Positions 20,247 through 45,239 of a DNA stretch of 64,000 nucleotides are shown here, piece after piece. Source of the stretch: Hemiscyllium ocellatum (Eukaryota); contig NC_083437.1 in assembly GCF_020745735.1 (NCBI RefSeq), forward strand, positions 15,624,001 to 15,688,000. The letters run 5' to 3'. How positions within the stretch are numbered: the first letter of the stretch is position 1; each line of letters starts with the position of its first letter. The notes under the pieces are model-generated. The model did not search any database. It was given only the letters and a program-made list of their open reading frames with translations, and had not been told where the DNA came from. The translations under genes and the position numbers were made by a program.

Positions 20247-22733
20247 TGCAACAAGGTCAGCCAAGTGGACCTCATAGAATATGAGTTCCCTGATTGGGGA
20301 ACCTGGTCCAATCAGGGAGCCCTGGCTGACAGATGTAAGCAGGAGTGTTGCTATAGTCGGTGTGCTCCTGCTGGTACTGAGGTGGAGAAGAGGCGTTTCT
20401 TTGTCTCTTTCCCCCTTTGTTTAGGAAAGATATTTGTTTCTTTTTTGTTTGGGTTTCTTTATTGTTTGTTCGTGTTTGTTTTTTCTTTATTTTGAGCTAT
20501 GCCAAGCTATTTGGCAGCCACCACCATCGCTGCTGCTGCTGCAGCCTGGGGCCTGTATATTACAAAGAAAAAAATAATTTTAAAAAAGTATAAGCAGGGG
20601 TATCAGGGGCTGTGCTCACTCCAGGAGCAGGCTCTGAGGGAGCTGGGTCAGTGTCATGTATTGTGTATAAATGAAGGGCGACTCGGTGACAGGATACTGG
20701 CCTTCATGGAGATATTTCAATGGCCAAGAGAATGCCATGCCTTCCTATGTGGCAGCAGGCTGAGTGTCAGCTCAACAGTGGCCCAACGGAGAAGAACGCC
20801 CAATATTGTATGCTTCCTGAGCCAAACGCAAAGACACCCAGATAAAGAAGCAAGGTTTGGCGGTCATCTTTGGTGTGAGGACGTTCCACCAGTACCATTG
20901 GATGTAAATTTACAATAGTAAAGGATTAGAAACCTCTGCTCAGGCTACTTAGAGGACAGGATTGTGCCACCCATAACCTCAGGTCAAATCCAGCAATGGG
21001 CTCATATTCTGAGTGTGTACAATGACAAAATGGAACACCATCCAGGAGGGCCAAGTCCAAATGCAGATGCTTTGAGCCGCATCCAAACCCTGGAAGAGTT
21101 TGTTCTGGTTTAAAACTTTCCAGTCACCGTGACAATATCAGATTGTGGATACAGACAGATTCCATCCTGGCAAAACCAAAACAGCTGCTGGTGATGGGGG
21201 AAACACAATGGCCCCCACAACCAGAGTTGAAAACTTTCTGGATCTGGTGAGACTAGGCCACTACAGAGAACAGCATACTATTATGGGGAATGAGAGGGAT
21301 TGTCCCGATCATAGGTCACCGCCAGCTACTGGCTGATCTCCACCAGGGTCATCCAGGGGCTTCCAAAATGATGATGTTGGTAAGATATTATGGCTGGTGG
21401 CCAGGATTGGATGCCGATGTGGCCGTATTGGTGGGACAGTACGCAGAGTGTCAACAAGGACAAAAATTAAATGCTGCAGCTCCCCCCACCCTGACATTTG
21501 AGGGACTAGCTGGGTAAACCCTGGACTTGGTTACACCTCGACAATGCTGGTCTTTCTTGGGTTCTACCTTTTGTAGTCACTGTGGACGCCTATTCAAAGT
21601 GGTAAGAACTATATAGAGTTCATTCATCAAACGCGGGGGAGGGGTGATGATTGAAAAGCTGCAAGCATCTTTTGTAATACACAGATTCCCAGTGGGGTTG
21701 GTCACAGACATTGCGCCATCATTCACCAGCAGTGAGTTTGAGTATTTTGTAAAGTTGAATGGCATTTGGCACGTAAGGACAGCACCATACCATCCATCGT
21801 CCAATGGTCTGGTGGAAAGAGCAATCCAAACTTTGAAGGCAGGCTTAAGGAAACAGCCTATAGCTTTACCAAATTCCAACTGTCCCAGTTCCTGTTTGAT
21901 TATAGGACCATCCCTCATGCAACTACAGAGATAGCTCCTGCAGAGTTGCTAATGAGGAGAAGATTGCACACCATGCCACCATTAAACAAGTTCCCTGATT
22001 GGACCAGGTTAACAGCCCCAATCAGGGAGCCTTGGCTGACAGATAGAAACAGGAGTATCTGACTTGTGTCTGTAGTGTAGTGGTCATCACGTTGGCCTCA
22101 CACGTGAAAAGGTCCCCAGTTCGAAACTGGGCAGAAACTGCTTTGCTCTTCAACTGCAGCCTTTTGAGGGATTTGATGGCCTAGTGGTATTATCACTGAA
22201 CAGTTAATCCAGAGACCTAGGTAATGTTCTGGCGACCCGAGTTCAAATCCCACCACCACAGCAGATGATGGAATTTGAATCCAATAAAAGTCTGGTGTTA
22301 AGAGTTTATCACACAGCATTGCTCTCTTTGATGTGAAGGGCACTGCTTGTCACTGGCAAAAAGAAACAGGAGTATCCCCCTTCACTGTTTGATCACGAGA
22401 AAAAGAAAAAAAAAATTTAACTCTATTGGAAAACTACAAGAATAATCGATACAGTGTCTAATTAACTGTTCCAATGTAGTACATCCCATAAACACACTCC
22501 TTGACAAAAAACAAAATTCAGAGACAAAGATTTGTTTCACAGGTAAACCAGAAGCAGAGAGAAACCCCAGTTTCCAGCTGTAACTGAGAAAATAGGAAAA
22601 AAAGAAACAGGAGTATCAAGGACGCTGCTCCTTCTGAGAGCTGGCTGTGCTAACTGGGTCAGTATCATTCATTGAGCAATGTAACTAAAGGGTGACTTGG
22701 TGACAGGATACCAGCCTTTGTGGAGCTGTTTCA
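20247..22733 (+). mobile_element. Decayed, internally deleted Ty3/Gypsy LTR retrotransposon
   Basis: LTR-like segments at about 20247-20719 and 21988-22733, both ending TTTCA. PBS-like tggccaagagaatg at 20721 resembles the tRNA-Ser(GCT) complement TGGCGACGAGGATG. RNaseH-end NADALSR, integrase zinc finger LHQGHPG..WWPGLD..C, and core TAPYHPSSNGLVER. Confidence 0.88.
22066..22139 (+). pseudogene. tRNA-Val(CAC)-derived pseudogene or retrocopy
   Basis: Close to the vertebrate tRNA-Val(CAC) sequence, anticodon CAC 22099-22101, perfect T-stem. Has a G-A mismatch in the acceptor stem, G-G in the anticodon stem and an extra A. Lies inside an LTR insertion. Confidence 0.85.
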
Positions 22734-23260
22734 AATGTCACATCTCTATGCCCTACCCCCTGTCTTCTGTTCCTGTCTACACTGGGAATGTCTGATTTCA
22801 CAAGCAATGATTCCAGTGCCTACCAGGACTGGTATAGCTAGATTTTTTATCAGATATTTTAAAGTGATAAAAGGTTTTATGTGTGGAAGATGCTGTTTTG
22901 GTAAAACAATTGAAGCCAACACAACACAGGCTGCCTGTGAAGATCCCCTGAGCTGCTAAGTGACCTGCTGCCCCTCAATTTGGACTCTACTGAGCTCCCA
23001 GCATCTGGAAAATACATGGGCATCAGGTCATTGGGAACCTTACCATCACTAAGTTCCCTTCCAGGTCACACAGCATCTTTCACCACTGCTGGGCCAAAAT
23101 CCTGGAACTCTATCCCAAACAGCCAGATCGCCTGCTTCAGCTTCTCTTACATTGACACGAATTATACTTAGTGTTTTCCCATCTTCACCATCAGTGGCAA
23201 CATCATTTATAGTACTGCTCCTCAATGATCCGATCTGGTGTAACATTTCATTCTGCCCAG

Positions 23261-23392
23261 GTCCTGGAAGAGGCCAAGAGGGATGCAGATCTCCATCACG
23301 TTGCCTGCAATGTTGTGAAGAAGCCAGGCACAGTGTACTTCATGTACAGGCGGGATTCTGGCCAGCGGTACTTCTCCATCCTTTCACCAAAG
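23261..23392 (+). CDS. C1orf50: C1orf50 homolog coding exon 4 ([44 protein letters not shown])
   Basis: Flanked by ctgcccag| and |gtcagc, 132 nt. Conserved [12 protein letters not shown] and YFSI.SPK motifs. Confidence 0.95.
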
Positions 23393-23439
23393 GTCAGCTG
23401 GGTTTAAATATTTCCAAGGAAGGGGAAGGACATCCACAT

Positions 23440-43365: not shown

Positions 43366-43683
43366 TCGAGAGCAGGTGGGTCTTGAACCCAGGGTCAGAA
43401 GTAAGGACTTTATCACTGCATCACAAGAGCCTTTTCTGTTTAGTTTCTAACATTAGAGTGAGGGTGGCGATTTTACATAAATGCTCACAGGTCCCACCTA
43501 ATAGTTTTCTATAATTTAACAGGTCTATAATGGTAAATTGTAATCTCTGTGAAATTTTAAGGAGATTTTAAATTTTCATCACCAATTTTACAGTAAATAA
43601 AATTCACTTTCAAATGAGTGGTAAAAGTGGTCAAACTGGTGTATTTATAAGCCTTTCAATTTCAGAGCAGAAGGAGGCCATCA

Positions 43684-44305
43684 CAGAGTCATCGAGATGT
43701 ACAGCATGGAAAAAGTCTCTTTGGTCCAACTCATCCATGCCAACCAGATATCCCAACCCAATCTAGTCCCACCTGCCAGCACCCAGCACCCTCCAAACCC
43801 TTCCTATTCATATACCCATCCAGATGAGTTTTAACTGTTGCAATTGTACCAGCCTCCACCACTTCCTCTGGTAGCTCATTCCACAGACACACCACCCTCT
43901 GTGTGAAAAAGCTGCCGCTTAGGTCTCTTTTATATCTTTCCCAGGTAAAAACAATGACTGCAGATGCTGGAAACCAGATTCTGGATTAGTGGTGCTGGAA
44001 GAGCACAGCAATTCAGGCAGCATCCGAGAAACAGCTCCTCGGAAGCTGCCTGAACTGCTGTGCTCTTCCAGCACCACTAATCCAGAATTTATATCTTTCC
44101 CCTCTCATCCTGAACCTATGCCCTCTAGTTCTGGACTCCACCACGCTCCATAGAAAACACTTAGTCTATTTATCCTATCCATGGCCCTTATGATTTTGTA
44201 AACCTCTATAAGATGACCCCTCAGCCTCCATGCTCCAGGAAAAACAGTCCCAACCTATTCAGCCTCTCCCTTGAGCTAAAATCCTCCAAGTCTGGCAACA
44301 TCCTT
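43684..44305 (-). mobile_element. CR1 3' fragment interrupted by a hairpin element
   Basis: Colinear with the 6645-7100 CR1. Confidence 0.88.
43943..44087. mobile_element. Penelope-derived hairpin mini-element without ribozyme
   Basis: Inverted arms attctggattagtggtgctggaagagcacagc. 14-bp TSD tttatatctttccc at 43929-43942 and 44088-44101. Confidence 0.9.
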
Positions 44306-44550
44306 TTGATGGTTTATGCTAAGTTGTATCACCCCTGGATTTTGAAATCATGTTTGTACATTAAGGTCTAGGGCATTTATATATATCAGGAAAGGAGAAT
44401 GTGGTGATTGGAACATGGTCATCCAAGTTTAGAATATCAGTCTTGGCCCAAAACGTTGACCTTCCTGTTCCTCATATGCTGTCTGACCTGCTTTTCCAGC
44501 TCCACATCTATTGACTTTGGTTTTCAGCATCTGCAGCCCTTACTATCTCC

Positions 44551-45239
44551 TATAGAATATAAGTTCCCTGACTGGGGCTGTAAAGCTGGTCCAGTCAGGG
44601 AGCCCTGGTTGACAGACATAACCAGAATGTTGCAGAGGGGGGACGGCAGGTCTGAAGACCTCCTTGTGAGTCTGCTCCTGGACCTGGCCAAACTGGCCAT
44701 AAAGAGATCCAGGCATCGTGCAGTGGAGGGGGTCGTTAAGGCTGACTGCCTGCCCCTCTTCCGTGGTTATGTTTGAGCTCGGGTGTCTCTGGATAAAGAG
44801 CACGCGGTGTCCACCAACACCCTGGAGTTGTTCAGGGAGAGGTGGGCATCGCAGAGAGTGGAGTGCATTATTTCCCCCTCCAACCCTATTTTGATTTAAT
44901 TCCTGCCCTCCCCTTCACTGTTTGATCACGCAACATTGCCCTTTGATGAGAAGGGCACTGCTTATCACTGGCCACTCGGGTGTTTCTTTGCTTCCTGGTG
45001 GTGGAATATAAATAAAGATTTACAAACTTGTTATTCTTTGTTGTGCCCGATACCTACACACACACACACACACACACGACAAAAAAAAGGAAAGAAAAGA
45101 GAAAAAAGAAAATAAACAGGACTGTCAGTAGTCCTGTTCACTACGGGCTCTGAGCTATCTGGGTCTGTGTCATGTACTGTGCACGTGTAAATAAAGAGTG
45201 ACTTGGTGACGGGATACTGGCCTTCATGGAGTTACTTCA
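44551..45239 (+). mobile_element. Solo LTR of the same Gypsy family as 20247-22733, interrupted
   Basis: agaatataagttccctga...cagggagccctgg.tgacaga and gtgacttggtgacgggatactggccttcatggag.ta.ttca are shared with the other LTRs. Confidence 0.85.
44632..45111 (+). mobile_element. Tx1-clade LINE 3' end (ORF2 C-terminus, 3' UTR, A-rich tail)
   Basis: SEDLLVSLLLDLAKLAIKRSRHRAVEGVVKADCLPLFRGYV*ARVSLDKEHAVSTNTLELFRERW resembles Tx1 ORF2 ends. AATAAA, (CA)n and an A-rich tail follow. Confidence 0.8.

Follow-up and report, generated by a model that had tools for sequence, protein, structure and literature searches.

Recurrent A-tailed insertions at one site of an abundant LTR in a shark-type genome point to a site-specific L1/Tx1-superfamily LINE

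Background

Tx1 families with transposon targets, LTR retrotransposons included, and with SINE partners have been reported in crocodilians (PMC4494074). In that work, Tx1-8_Crp and Tx1-4_AMi lie in LTR retrotransposons, Tx1-Mar in Mariner-N4_AMi and Tx1L in Tx1D, and a family is called target-specific when >20% of its copies are flanked by the target (PMC4494074). LINEs that have become site-specific in nature are informative about the evolution of endonuclease specificity, and tools for targeted DNA insertion might be developed from them. Here, we analysed a 64-kb stretch of a shark-type genome (hereafter the window), together with public-run contigs of this species and of relatives, from which all genome-wide evidence is drawn.

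Results

One insertion site shared by three LTR units

The window contains three copies (c5, c3 and a solo unit) of an LTR-like unit of ~ 230 bp, with pairwise likeness of 72–82% and with left and right parts that are homologous at all three places by blastn, alignment and nhmmer; a nhmmer search for additional diverged copies in the window found none. Read by sequence, the unit carries a putative CCAAT pair, an ATAAA and an AATAAA, and its ends are of the TG...CA type (loose-end consensus start ...TGTAGTGATTG, terminus TTTCA). In contigs, the flanks of its copies agree at only 0.35–0.45, i.e. many are solo copies with unrelated surroundings, as an LTR would show. The hypothesis of a known RNA gene was rejected, Rfam giving just a tRNA in 19900–23000, and a 5-bp RTRAC target-site preference of the LTR, suggested by the loose-end consensi, was dropped because the upstream TGATGAC may be part of the LTR itself. 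An attempt to sample many LTR copies by means of ORFs spanning the right part of the LTR returned no candidates.

A 15-mer starting with ATAAA falls in the same alignment column of the three units, ~ 16 nt downstream of a perfect 11–13-bp inverted repeat able to form a stable hairpin, which in the solo unit includes a compensatory C.G pair. This column is occupied in 3/3 units by a total of four inserts, all of different sequence, A-tailed and in one orientation, which sit at a single nucleotide position just 3' of the inverted CCAAT pair and are each bounded by a 15-bp duplication, the A-rich tail directly preceding each downstream 15-mer. Since the inserts differ in sequence, they represent at least four independent insertion events. 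The first-pass annotation had proposed both a single site hit in all three LTR copies and independent, same-orientation, site-specific LINE insertions; both proposals are borne out by the shared column, the tails and the duplications, which support a LINE-type (target-primed) mechanism. Searching the window for the 15-mer with ≤ 3 mismatches retrieved 11 matches (including 20335, 20590, 22045, 22362, 22603 and 45112) for 3.9 expected, and 0/100 shuffles reached 11.

The features of c5 are as follows:

20237..20334 (start ± 10 bp), + strand: left part of LTR unit c5, by homology, its start inferred from the loose-end consensus ...TGATGACTGTAGTGATTGTAATG
20286-20297 and 20308-20318, + strand: inverted repeat TTCCCTGATTGG / CCAATCAGGGA in the left part
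20335..20349, + strand: upstream target-site duplication (TSD), GTAAGCAGGAGTGTT, by motif search
20350..20589, + strand: A-tailed insert of low genome copy number, without LINE-tail homology, read from the sequence
20590..20604, + strand: downstream TSD, ATAAGCAGGGGTATC, by motif search
20605..20720, + strand: right part of c5, with an AATAAA-like signal and TTTCA end, by homology

The two TSDs of c5 are identical at 11/15 positions. Its insert, of which the 20430–20525 bin has a depth of 529 in X1 and 4 in X17, is a candidate trans-mobilised polyadenylated RNA.

A LINE end in the solo unit

The solo unit, which lacks its 5' portion, provides the identity of the inserting element:

44552..44617, + strand: left part of the solo LTR unit, 5' portion absent, by homology
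44618..44631, + strand: upstream TSD, a decayed 14-mer, ATAACCAGAATGTT, read directly (the 3-mismatch motif search did not pick it up)
44632..45111, + strand: 5'-truncated LINE, by tblastn/blastx, HMMER search and contigs
44633-44899, + strand: last 88 codons of the LINE ORF2, with an in-frame TGA at 44774-44776
44900-45079, + strand: LINE 3' UTR, containing pieces A and B and (CA)n
45080-45111, + strand: A-rich tail of the LINE
45112..45126, + strand: downstream TSD, ATAAACAGGACTGTC, by motif search
45127..45239, + strand: right part of the solo unit, by homology, flanks diverging beyond 45239

The initial reading of this insert as the end of a LINE ORF2 is supported by tblastn/blastx (E 1e-21 to 8e-30). 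An exhaustive HMMER search with a 40-aa ORF2 piece matched only three short relatives (P0001, P0002 and P0004; ~ 54% identity), whose contigs (L001–L003) represent other families and hosts, and the fragment aligns with the extreme C-termini of 1282–1298-aa proteins combining Exo_endo_phos (APE), RVT_1 and zf-RVT domains (E down to 3e-8). P0002, located on contig L002 and adjoining Exo_endo_phos and RVT_1 ORFs, is 56–58% identical to the solo LINE C-terminus. The L002 ORF2 scores 537 bits (40% identity) against a catfish “transposon TX1 uncharacterized 149 kDa protein” vs 217 bits against human L1 ORF2p, an indirect link to the Tx1 clade, to which the solo-insert LINE probably belongs. The tblastn/blastx alignments of P0001 and P0004 also continue past 44632, on its upstream side, into left-part sequence of the LTR. 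We rejected this as chance extension because ~ 2/11 residues are identical there and because organism D, although nearly LINE-free, has the left part in abundance.

A homologous-protein search with a 47-aa ORF2 piece gave no candidates; Pfam assigned no family to the solo ORF2 C-terminal pieces or to the L002 ORF1 and C-terminal ORFs, and the ESM Atlas pointed only to zf-RVT clusters of chordates. Protein searches and LTR-spanning ORFs yielded neither a full-length copy of the solo-insert family nor an APE or RT sequence, which is why clade and specificity are here deduced from insertion products only.

A stack of insertions with LINE tails

The 22-kb unit carries two successive inserts:

21986..22044, + strand: left part of LTR unit c3, without its first ~ 50 bp, by homology
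22045..22059, + strand: first of three TSD copies, AGAAACAGGAGTATC
22060..22361, + strand: insert 1, composed of tRNA-Val(CAC), a linker, a SINE half and LINE-tail piece B, then CAAAA
22066-22139, + strand: tRNA-Val(CAC) of insert 1, by ARAGORN and Rfam (tRNA, 41.8 bits)
22167-22303, + strand: 5' half of a common shark SINE in insert 1
22305-22357, + strand: LINE-tail piece B in insert 1, by blastn
22362..22376, + strand: second TSD copy, by motif search
22377..22602, + strand: insert 2, composed of piece A, an A-run, ~ 185 bp of another repeat and an A-tail
22377-22397, + strand: LINE-tail piece A in insert 2
22603..22617, + strand: third TSD copy, by motif search
22618..22734, + strand: right part of c3, by homology

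The motif duplication described earlier is exact three times here and decayed in the other two LTR copies; the 15-mers at 22045, 22362 and 22603 are mutually identical (AGAAACAGGAGTATC), with one mismatch to the motif first proposed. The recurrence of 3' UTR pieces of the solo insert within these inserts also stood up, piece A matching 44910–44930 at 21/21 positions and piece B (22305–22357) matching 44922–44972 with 85% identity. Within the window, both pieces occur exclusively inside LTR sites, so that 3/3 tail-bearing inserts lie in the target.

The tRNA-Val-like part of insert 1 reaches a depth of 70k in X1 vs 88 in X17, and this tRNA-headed chimera with a LINE tail is a likely candidate for a SINE partner of the LINE. 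Insert 2 is composite, possibly through template switching. Of the four window inserts, two terminate in unrelated, polyadenylated non-LINE sequence. This counts among the points against a site-specific LINE as the explanation, and it suggests that the LINE machinery trans-mobilises such RNAs. No public RNA run was found to contain the 21990–22640 stretch.

No intact Gypsy element at the c5–c3 locus

Between c5 and c3 lies one further feature:

20722..21973, + strand: decayed remains of an LTR retroelement, with RNase H and integrase parts (Pfam Integrase_H2C2 and rve; RNase H motif read in frame)

This pol remnant begins 2 bp after c5 and ends ~ 12 bp before the 5'-truncated c3, and related contigs align to ~ 21973 only. 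A near-identical LTR pair framing a primer-binding site (PBS), gag-pol and a polypurine tract (PPT) between matching TSDs was not found: c5 is 72.5% alike to c3 and 82% to the solo unit, the locus has neither PBS nor PPT, and the flanks do not match. The initial pairing of c5 and c3, the latter lacking its first ~ 50 bp, as 5' and 3' LTRs of a Gypsy element is therefore doubtful. The unit is LTR-like, yet this locus is no intact Gypsy element.

Genome-wide recurrence and alternative explanations

Contigs of the same species display the empty LTR form, in which a lone TAGGATTAGGAGTGTC joins the left and right parts, as well as occupied forms, in which the left part and a 15-mer variant are fused to the LINE at 44747, 44851 and ~ 44949/50, or to tail piece B at 22326/7, although contig joints at 80% likeness within repeats can be noisy. 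These LTR–LINE junctions differ in their 5' truncation point while keeping the same nucleotide and one orientation. Taken with the window inserts, they show what products of target-primed reverse transcription (TPRT) show: a 3' A-tail right next to the downstream TSD, 5' ends truncated at varying points and a duplicated target site. Since contigs show the pattern genome-wide along with empty LTRs, neither unrelated flanks for most copies nor inserts belonging to the normal LTR consensus were encountered, as far as this could be tested. LINE-tail contigs have 5–10x the depth of the LTR, which requires stacks or many off-target copies, and the copy number of the site-specific system is probably in the tens of thousands. 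In organism D, a relative, the LTR is abundant and the LINE tail ~ 100x or more lower; the target is therefore older than the LINE expansion.

The same excess of tail depth could be expected from an ordinary L1-like LINE with a loose TTTAT/C-type preference, otherwise dispersed, for which the site would be a hot spot, perhaps structurally exposed beside the inverted repeat. The bottom-strand ...TTTAT/C does resemble the loose sites of L1-type elements, the repeat able to form a stable hairpin is only ~ 16 nt upstream, and non-LINE RNAs account for two of the inserts, as happens when L1 trans-mobilises RNAs. Such an explanation is nevertheless improbable, as 3/3 LTR units, 4/4 events and many contig junctions share the nucleotide and a constant 15-bp TSD, and no tail copy of the window lies outside LTR sites.

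U3 regions of LTRs are variable, and the LTR element's own RT might, while replicating, have jumped from the A-rich 15-mer to polyadenylated RNAs packaged alongside, the ATAAA start being able to pair with an oligo(dT)-ended cDNA. LTR variants whose inserts are framed by a repeated 15-mer would result. We give this very little weight: it leaves the exact, 15-bp duplicating return unexplained without homology at the insert 5' end, whereas inserts vary from copy to copy rather than being inherited by subfamily, most carry the tail of one LINE family, exact-TSD stacks are present in an old, decayed LTR, and the LTR thrives in organism D without these inserts. Chance or assembly artefact, for which we found no supporting point, deserves practically no credence in view of the shuffle statistics (11 matches in 0/100), the presence of the loci in independent public runs and junctions in contigs of several species.

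Discussion

Taken together, we consider it likely that an L1/Tx1-superfamily LINE of APE type, probably of the Tx1 clade, inserts by TPRT at one fixed site of a short and very abundant ~ 230-bp LTR. At the left border of the 15-mer (in top-strand view, ...CTGACAG^ATAAACAGGAGTRTC), the LINE endonuclease would nick the bottom strand, the bottom-strand 3' end ...CCTGTTTAT would prime on the poly(A) tail, and the top strand would be cut 15 nt downstream. Such a scheme would produce inserts of the same orientation, with the A-tail beside the right-hand 15-mer and a 15-bp duplication recreating the target, which would then be open to more hits and yield head-to-tail stacks as at 22045–22617. The same enzyme may also copy other RNAs, i.e. 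the tRNA-Val-headed chimera with the LINE 3' tail and polyadenylated RNAs without it.

More speculatively, the LINE could be specialised on the LTR core promoter, landing in sense ~ 15 nt downstream of a TATA-like ATAAA and just after the CCAAT pair; we regard this as unlikely. If true, a full-length copy would find a Pol II promoter already in place and could do without one itself, a clear case of a retroelement exploiting the regulatory module of another. Each insertion would also separate the LTR enhancer from the start site while recreating the target, and the ~ 10^4 LTRs of the genome would serve as landing sites that renew themselves and, in addition, preserve a record of cellular RNAs. 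The earlier idea that insertion disables the host element fared poorly: the LTR is abundant in a relative nearly without the LINE tail, and the absence of a flank consensus (agreement 0.35) is as expected if LTR copies are mostly solo or dead.

Our results document, at nucleotide resolution, a LINE of very high copy number in the genome of a cartilaginous fish, probably of APE type and likely strict in its choice of site, along with a candidate SINE partner and candidate trans-mobilised RNAs. For annotation, they account for a recurrent combination of an LTR with an A-tailed stack, which might otherwise be mistaken for arrays or new elements.

Among known systems, Tx1-8_Crp and Tx1-4_AMi are likened to this one by target type, not by sequence; their host is crocodilian, the main text of PMC4494074 gives them without site, TSD or promoter context, and the site described here is resolved to the nucleotide within the LTR itself, with a 15-bp TSD and stacks. 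The crocodilian Tx1-Mar/SINEU system (PMC4494074) similarly associates a site-preferring Tx1 LINE with non-autonomous partners that share its target, in nested or stacked copies within one transposon family, but its target is a Mariner DNA transposon and its partners bear U1/U2 snRNA heads, whereas the present insertions are into an LTR, and the candidate partner starts with a tRNA-Val and includes part of an older SINE. In Xenopus laevis, Tx1L in Tx1D (Christensen et al. 2000, as presented in PMC4494074) is the founding case of a LINE endonuclease aimed at one site of another transposon family; as relayed there, its target is a DNA transposon and its specificity was shown biochemically, while here the target is an LTR and specificity is deduced from insertion products. 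Keno, Kibi/Koshi and R1/R2-type LINEs share a fixed site and orientation, repeated targets and tandem stacking, but target RNA genes or microsatellites; R2 moreover uses a restriction-like endonuclease and is co-transcribed with its target, which can only be conjectured here. The “hyperparasite” of the first-pass annotation is not a new concept, given Tx1L/Tx1D, Tx1-Mar, Tx1-8_Crp and Tx1-4_AMi (PMC4494074): a shark-genome LINE targeting one LTR site is a further example of a known Tx1-type habit rather than a new kind of system.

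A single insertion site in three copies of one LTR unit

Self-blastn, MAFFT and nhmmer profiles recovered one LTR unit present in exactly three copies over the 64 kb (c5, c3 and a solo copy), each interrupted between a left and a right part (forward-strand coordinates):

20274-20349, left part of c5
20605-20720, right part of c5
21986-22059, left part of c3
22618-22734, right part of c3
44552-44632, left part of the solo copy
45127-45239, right part of the solo copy

Pairwise identities of 72-82% (82% between c5 and the solo copy, 72.5% between c5 and c3) indicated that these copies are old. 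Public-run contigs aligned at 80% likeness delimited the unit better than the window copies, extending it upstream of 44552 and 20254 (loose-end consensus ...TGATGACTGTAGTGATTGTAATGAGGTCAGCCAGGTGGACCTC, agreement 0.57-0.74). It starts at ~20237 in c5, ends with TTTCA at 20720, 22733/4 and 45239, and is flanked by sequence without consensus (agreement 0.35-0.45), therefore representing a unit of ~230 bp with TG...CA-type ends. With its CCAAT inverted pair, one ATAAA, one AATAAA and a very high contig depth in all four organisms examined, its sequence behaves like that of a short, mostly solo LTR.

Searching the 15-mer ATAAACAGGAGTRTC with up to 3 mismatches returned 11 matches in the window against 3.9 expected, a count reached in 0/100 shuffles. 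Six of these 11 (20335, 20590, 22045, 22362, 22603 and 45112) correspond to sites of the first-pass annotation, which had described this motif as duplicated around A-tailed inserts in all three LTR copies; the seventh, a degenerate copy at 44618-44631 in the solo LTR, was recovered by direct reading as a decayed 14-mer, ATAACCAGAATGTT. The copies at 22045, 22362 and 22603, claimed to be exact, are indeed mutually identical (AGAAACAGGAGTATC). The 15-mer occupies the same alignment column in all three units, immediately 3' of ...CCAATCAGGGAGCCCTGGCTGACAG, and an A-rich run precedes each downstream copy (...TTTTAAAAAAGT, ...CACTGGCAAAA, ...ATAGGAAAAAA, ...GAGAAAAAAGAAA).

Contrasted inserts, three of them with LINE-tail sequence

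Four inserts were delimited by these duplications:

44632-45111, solo copy, 5'-truncated LINE (frame 1: ...QRGDGRSEDLLVSLLLDLAKLAIKRSRHRAVEGVVKADCLPLFRGYV, stop, ARVSLDKEHAVSTNTLELFRERWASQRVECIISPSNPILI, stop)
22060-22361, c3 insert 1, in five parts: tRNA-Val(CAC), linker, SINE 5' half, LINE-tail piece B, CAAAA
22377-22602, c3 insert 2: LINE-tail piece A, A-run, ~185 bp of other moderately repeated sequence, second A-tail
20350-20589, c5 insert, low copy (depth 529 in the window's species vs 4 in its relative, organism D)

The reading of the solo insert as an ORF2 end was borne out by tblastn and blastx, the fragment matching its relatives at E 1e-21 to 8e-30 and aligning to the C-termini (last ~90 residues) of 1282-1298-aa APE+RT proteins with Exo_endo_phos, RVT_1 and zf-RVT domains. 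Its 40-aa ORF2 piece retrieved three short relatives among 1.8 billion representatives, and one of these, P0002, is the tail of an APE+RT LINE on the 18-kb contig L002. ORF2 of L002 scored 537 bits (40% identity) against the NCBI-named 'transposon TX1 uncharacterized 149 kDa protein' vs 217 bits against human L1 ORF2p. Because of these matches and scores, the solo insert is, on sequence similarity, assigned to an ORF2 end of the L1/Tx1 superfamily, and likely to the Tx1 clade. Since most related contigs have AGA (44774 T>A) in place of the in-frame TGA at 44774-44776, this copy represents a decayed member, ~15% from its relatives.

The region 1-12190 of L002 harbors two near-full-length APE+RT LINEs head to tail, with a long poly(A) between them. 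Among the sequences recovered, none of full length is closer to the window's ORF2 fragment; the two elements themselves are most closely related to sea-turtle and fish LINEs. Contig L003, from the same ENA sample ('metagenome' assembly), matches the window's CR1-like element (4927-5565) at 84% and is of vertebrate origin, from a relative of the window's organism. Three repeats (~96% identity) of a 1.5-kb unit that includes a related LINE 3' end occupy its region 3312-7066, either as a tandem duplication or as a stack belonging to another family.

Pieces of the solo insert's 3' UTR were reported in the c3 inserts and were retrieved there, and nowhere else within the 64-kb window: piece A (44910-44930) opens insert 2 with 21/21 identities, and piece B (44922-44972) lies at 22305-22357 in insert 1 at 85% identity. 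The tRNA-Val(CAC) of insert 1 (22066-22139; ARAGORN, Rfam 41.8 bits) reaches a contig depth of 70k in the window's species vs 88 in organism D, and is thus a lineage-specific repeat and candidate SINE partner. The SINE 5' half (22167-22303) shares 82% identity with the minus strand of 14441-14575, within a full copy of a common tRNA-derived shark SINE (14280-14590, minus strand); as the 3' region of that copy differs, insert 1 is a tail-swapped chimera. In insert 2, no TSD marks the fusion of the 21-nt LINE tail and A-run to the ~185 bp of other repeat, and this composite may be a template-switch chimera formed in one insertion. The c5 insert lacks LINE-tail homology and looks like a trans-mobilised polyadenylated RNA. 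The inserts thus differ between LTR copies and are independent, as had been proposed.

Empty sites, varied joints and depth in public-run contigs

Contigs of X1, a run of the window's species, contained an empty site in which the left part (to 44616) is followed by a single TAGGATTAGGAGTGTC plus AGACGTTCTGCTCACT and by the right part from 45148; among the joints listed, further left-to-right joints occurred in X1, X5, X9 and X17 (organism D). Other X1 contigs joined the left part and a 15-mer variant to the LINE at 44747 (CTACGAACTGGAGTGTCAT), 44851 (AATAAAAAGGATGTGAT) or ~44949/50, the latter with at least three different linkers. Additional joints linked 20333 to 22327 via GATAAATAGGAGCTA, 22618 to 22326 via TTGCC, 22417 to 22329 in a stack-type arrangement, and 22396 to 22326 via ACAGCCTTGCC, in the usual A-to-B UTR order; those listed here belong to a total higher by hundreds. 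Because of these empty sites and varied LINE joints, the inserts fall outside the LTR consensus, contrary to one of the refuting outcomes named in the first-pass annotation, and the site must have received many independent insertions.

Taking contig depth as a rough guide only, the LINE tail exceeded the LTR 5-10-fold in organisms A, B and C, but reached 0-3,000 vs 60,000-150,000 for the LTR in organism D. The LTR family is thus older than, or independent of, the LINE-tail expansion. This contrast argues against the LTR and the LINE forming one element, and against the idea of a LINE whose main effect is to disable live hosts.

A doubtful Gypsy pair

The interval between c5 and c3 holds a decayed RNase H/integrase remnant (Pfam Integrase_H2C2, E 1.4e-10, plus rve), starting 2 bp 3' of c5; its likeness to other Gypsy contigs ends at ~21973, 12 bp before c3. 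This locus had been annotated as a Gypsy element with paired 5' and 3' LTRs. The pair is doubtful and not demonstrable given the 72.5% identity, a c3 deprived of its first ~50 bp, and no PBS, PPT or matching flank at the locus; judged on sequence, it is not an intact element, and the Gypsy assignment of the LTR unit is weakened.

Other features were observed in the window:

30634-33309, minus strand, intact single-exon ORF of 892 codons with matches to each of the four Pfam domains of AP5B1 (E 3e-147 for the middle domain), the host gene for AP-5 complex subunit beta-1
34519-36558, minus strand, and 57472-58107, plus strand, ORFs of another retroelement, Penelope-like by eye, with RVT_1 (34522-35676) as sole Pfam match
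44452-44551, short pieces related to that retroelement, adjoining the solo LTR

Proposed insertion mechanism and rival explanations

Target-primed reverse transcription, with the two nicks staggered by 15 nt, is consistent with the data. As the A-tail always adjoins the right-hand 15-mer, the priming nick would fall on the bottom strand, at the left-hand boundary of the 15-mer (5'-GATACTCCTGTTTAT^CTGTCAG-3'), leaving a T-rich 3' end, and the top strand would be cut 3' of GTRTC; we infer these positions, the enzyme identity and trans-mobilisation. Duplication of the entire 15-mer restores the target and lets stacks grow, the re-used copy among the three identical TSDs of c3 being indistinguishable. 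All three LTR copies carry a perfect inverted repeat of 11-13 bp (TTCCCTGAYTGG...CCARTCAGGGA; 20286-20318, 21991-22028, 44564-44601) at 16-17 nt 5' of the nick. The 10-15-nt loop differs among copies both in sequence and in length, whereas the stem of the solo copy still pairs owing to a compensatory double change (T.A to C.G); the DNA hairpin is predicted at -14 to -18 kcal/mol. These features point to a palindrome or hairpin under constraint near the insertion site, which may be relevant to the LTR, the endonuclease, or both.

Repeated hits by a loosely specific LINE at a mere hot spot are a less likely alternative, hard to reconcile with a site and a TSD length that are both constant. Capture of the inserts through template switching by the RT of the LTR element itself fails to account for the exact 15-bp duplications, the copy-specific inserts, the young stacks within old LTRs, and an LTR that thrives without inserts in organism D. 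The shuffles, the independent public runs that contain the loci, and the joints and empty sites of the contigs exclude chance or artefact. A site-specific LINE is a well-supported and, in our view, probable reading, while a putative borrowing of the LTR promoter by this LINE appears rather unlikely.

Our literature search found no account, for sharks, of an LTR-targeting LINE, and none of a TATA-region site. Target specificity is typical of Tx1-clade LINEs, whose targets include the DNA transposon Tx1D (for Tx1), U2 genes (Keno) and microsatellites (Kibi and Koshi). Crocodilian examples are Tx1-Mar, which targets Mariner-N4_AMi and mobilises SINEU, Tx1-9_AMi, which targets Harbinger elements, and Tx1-8_Crp and Tx1-4_AMi, which target LTR retrotransposons (PMC4494074); dependence on transcription of the target is also discussed in that study. 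Because of these precedents, an LTR-resident LINE with a target-sharing SINE is already known as a kind.
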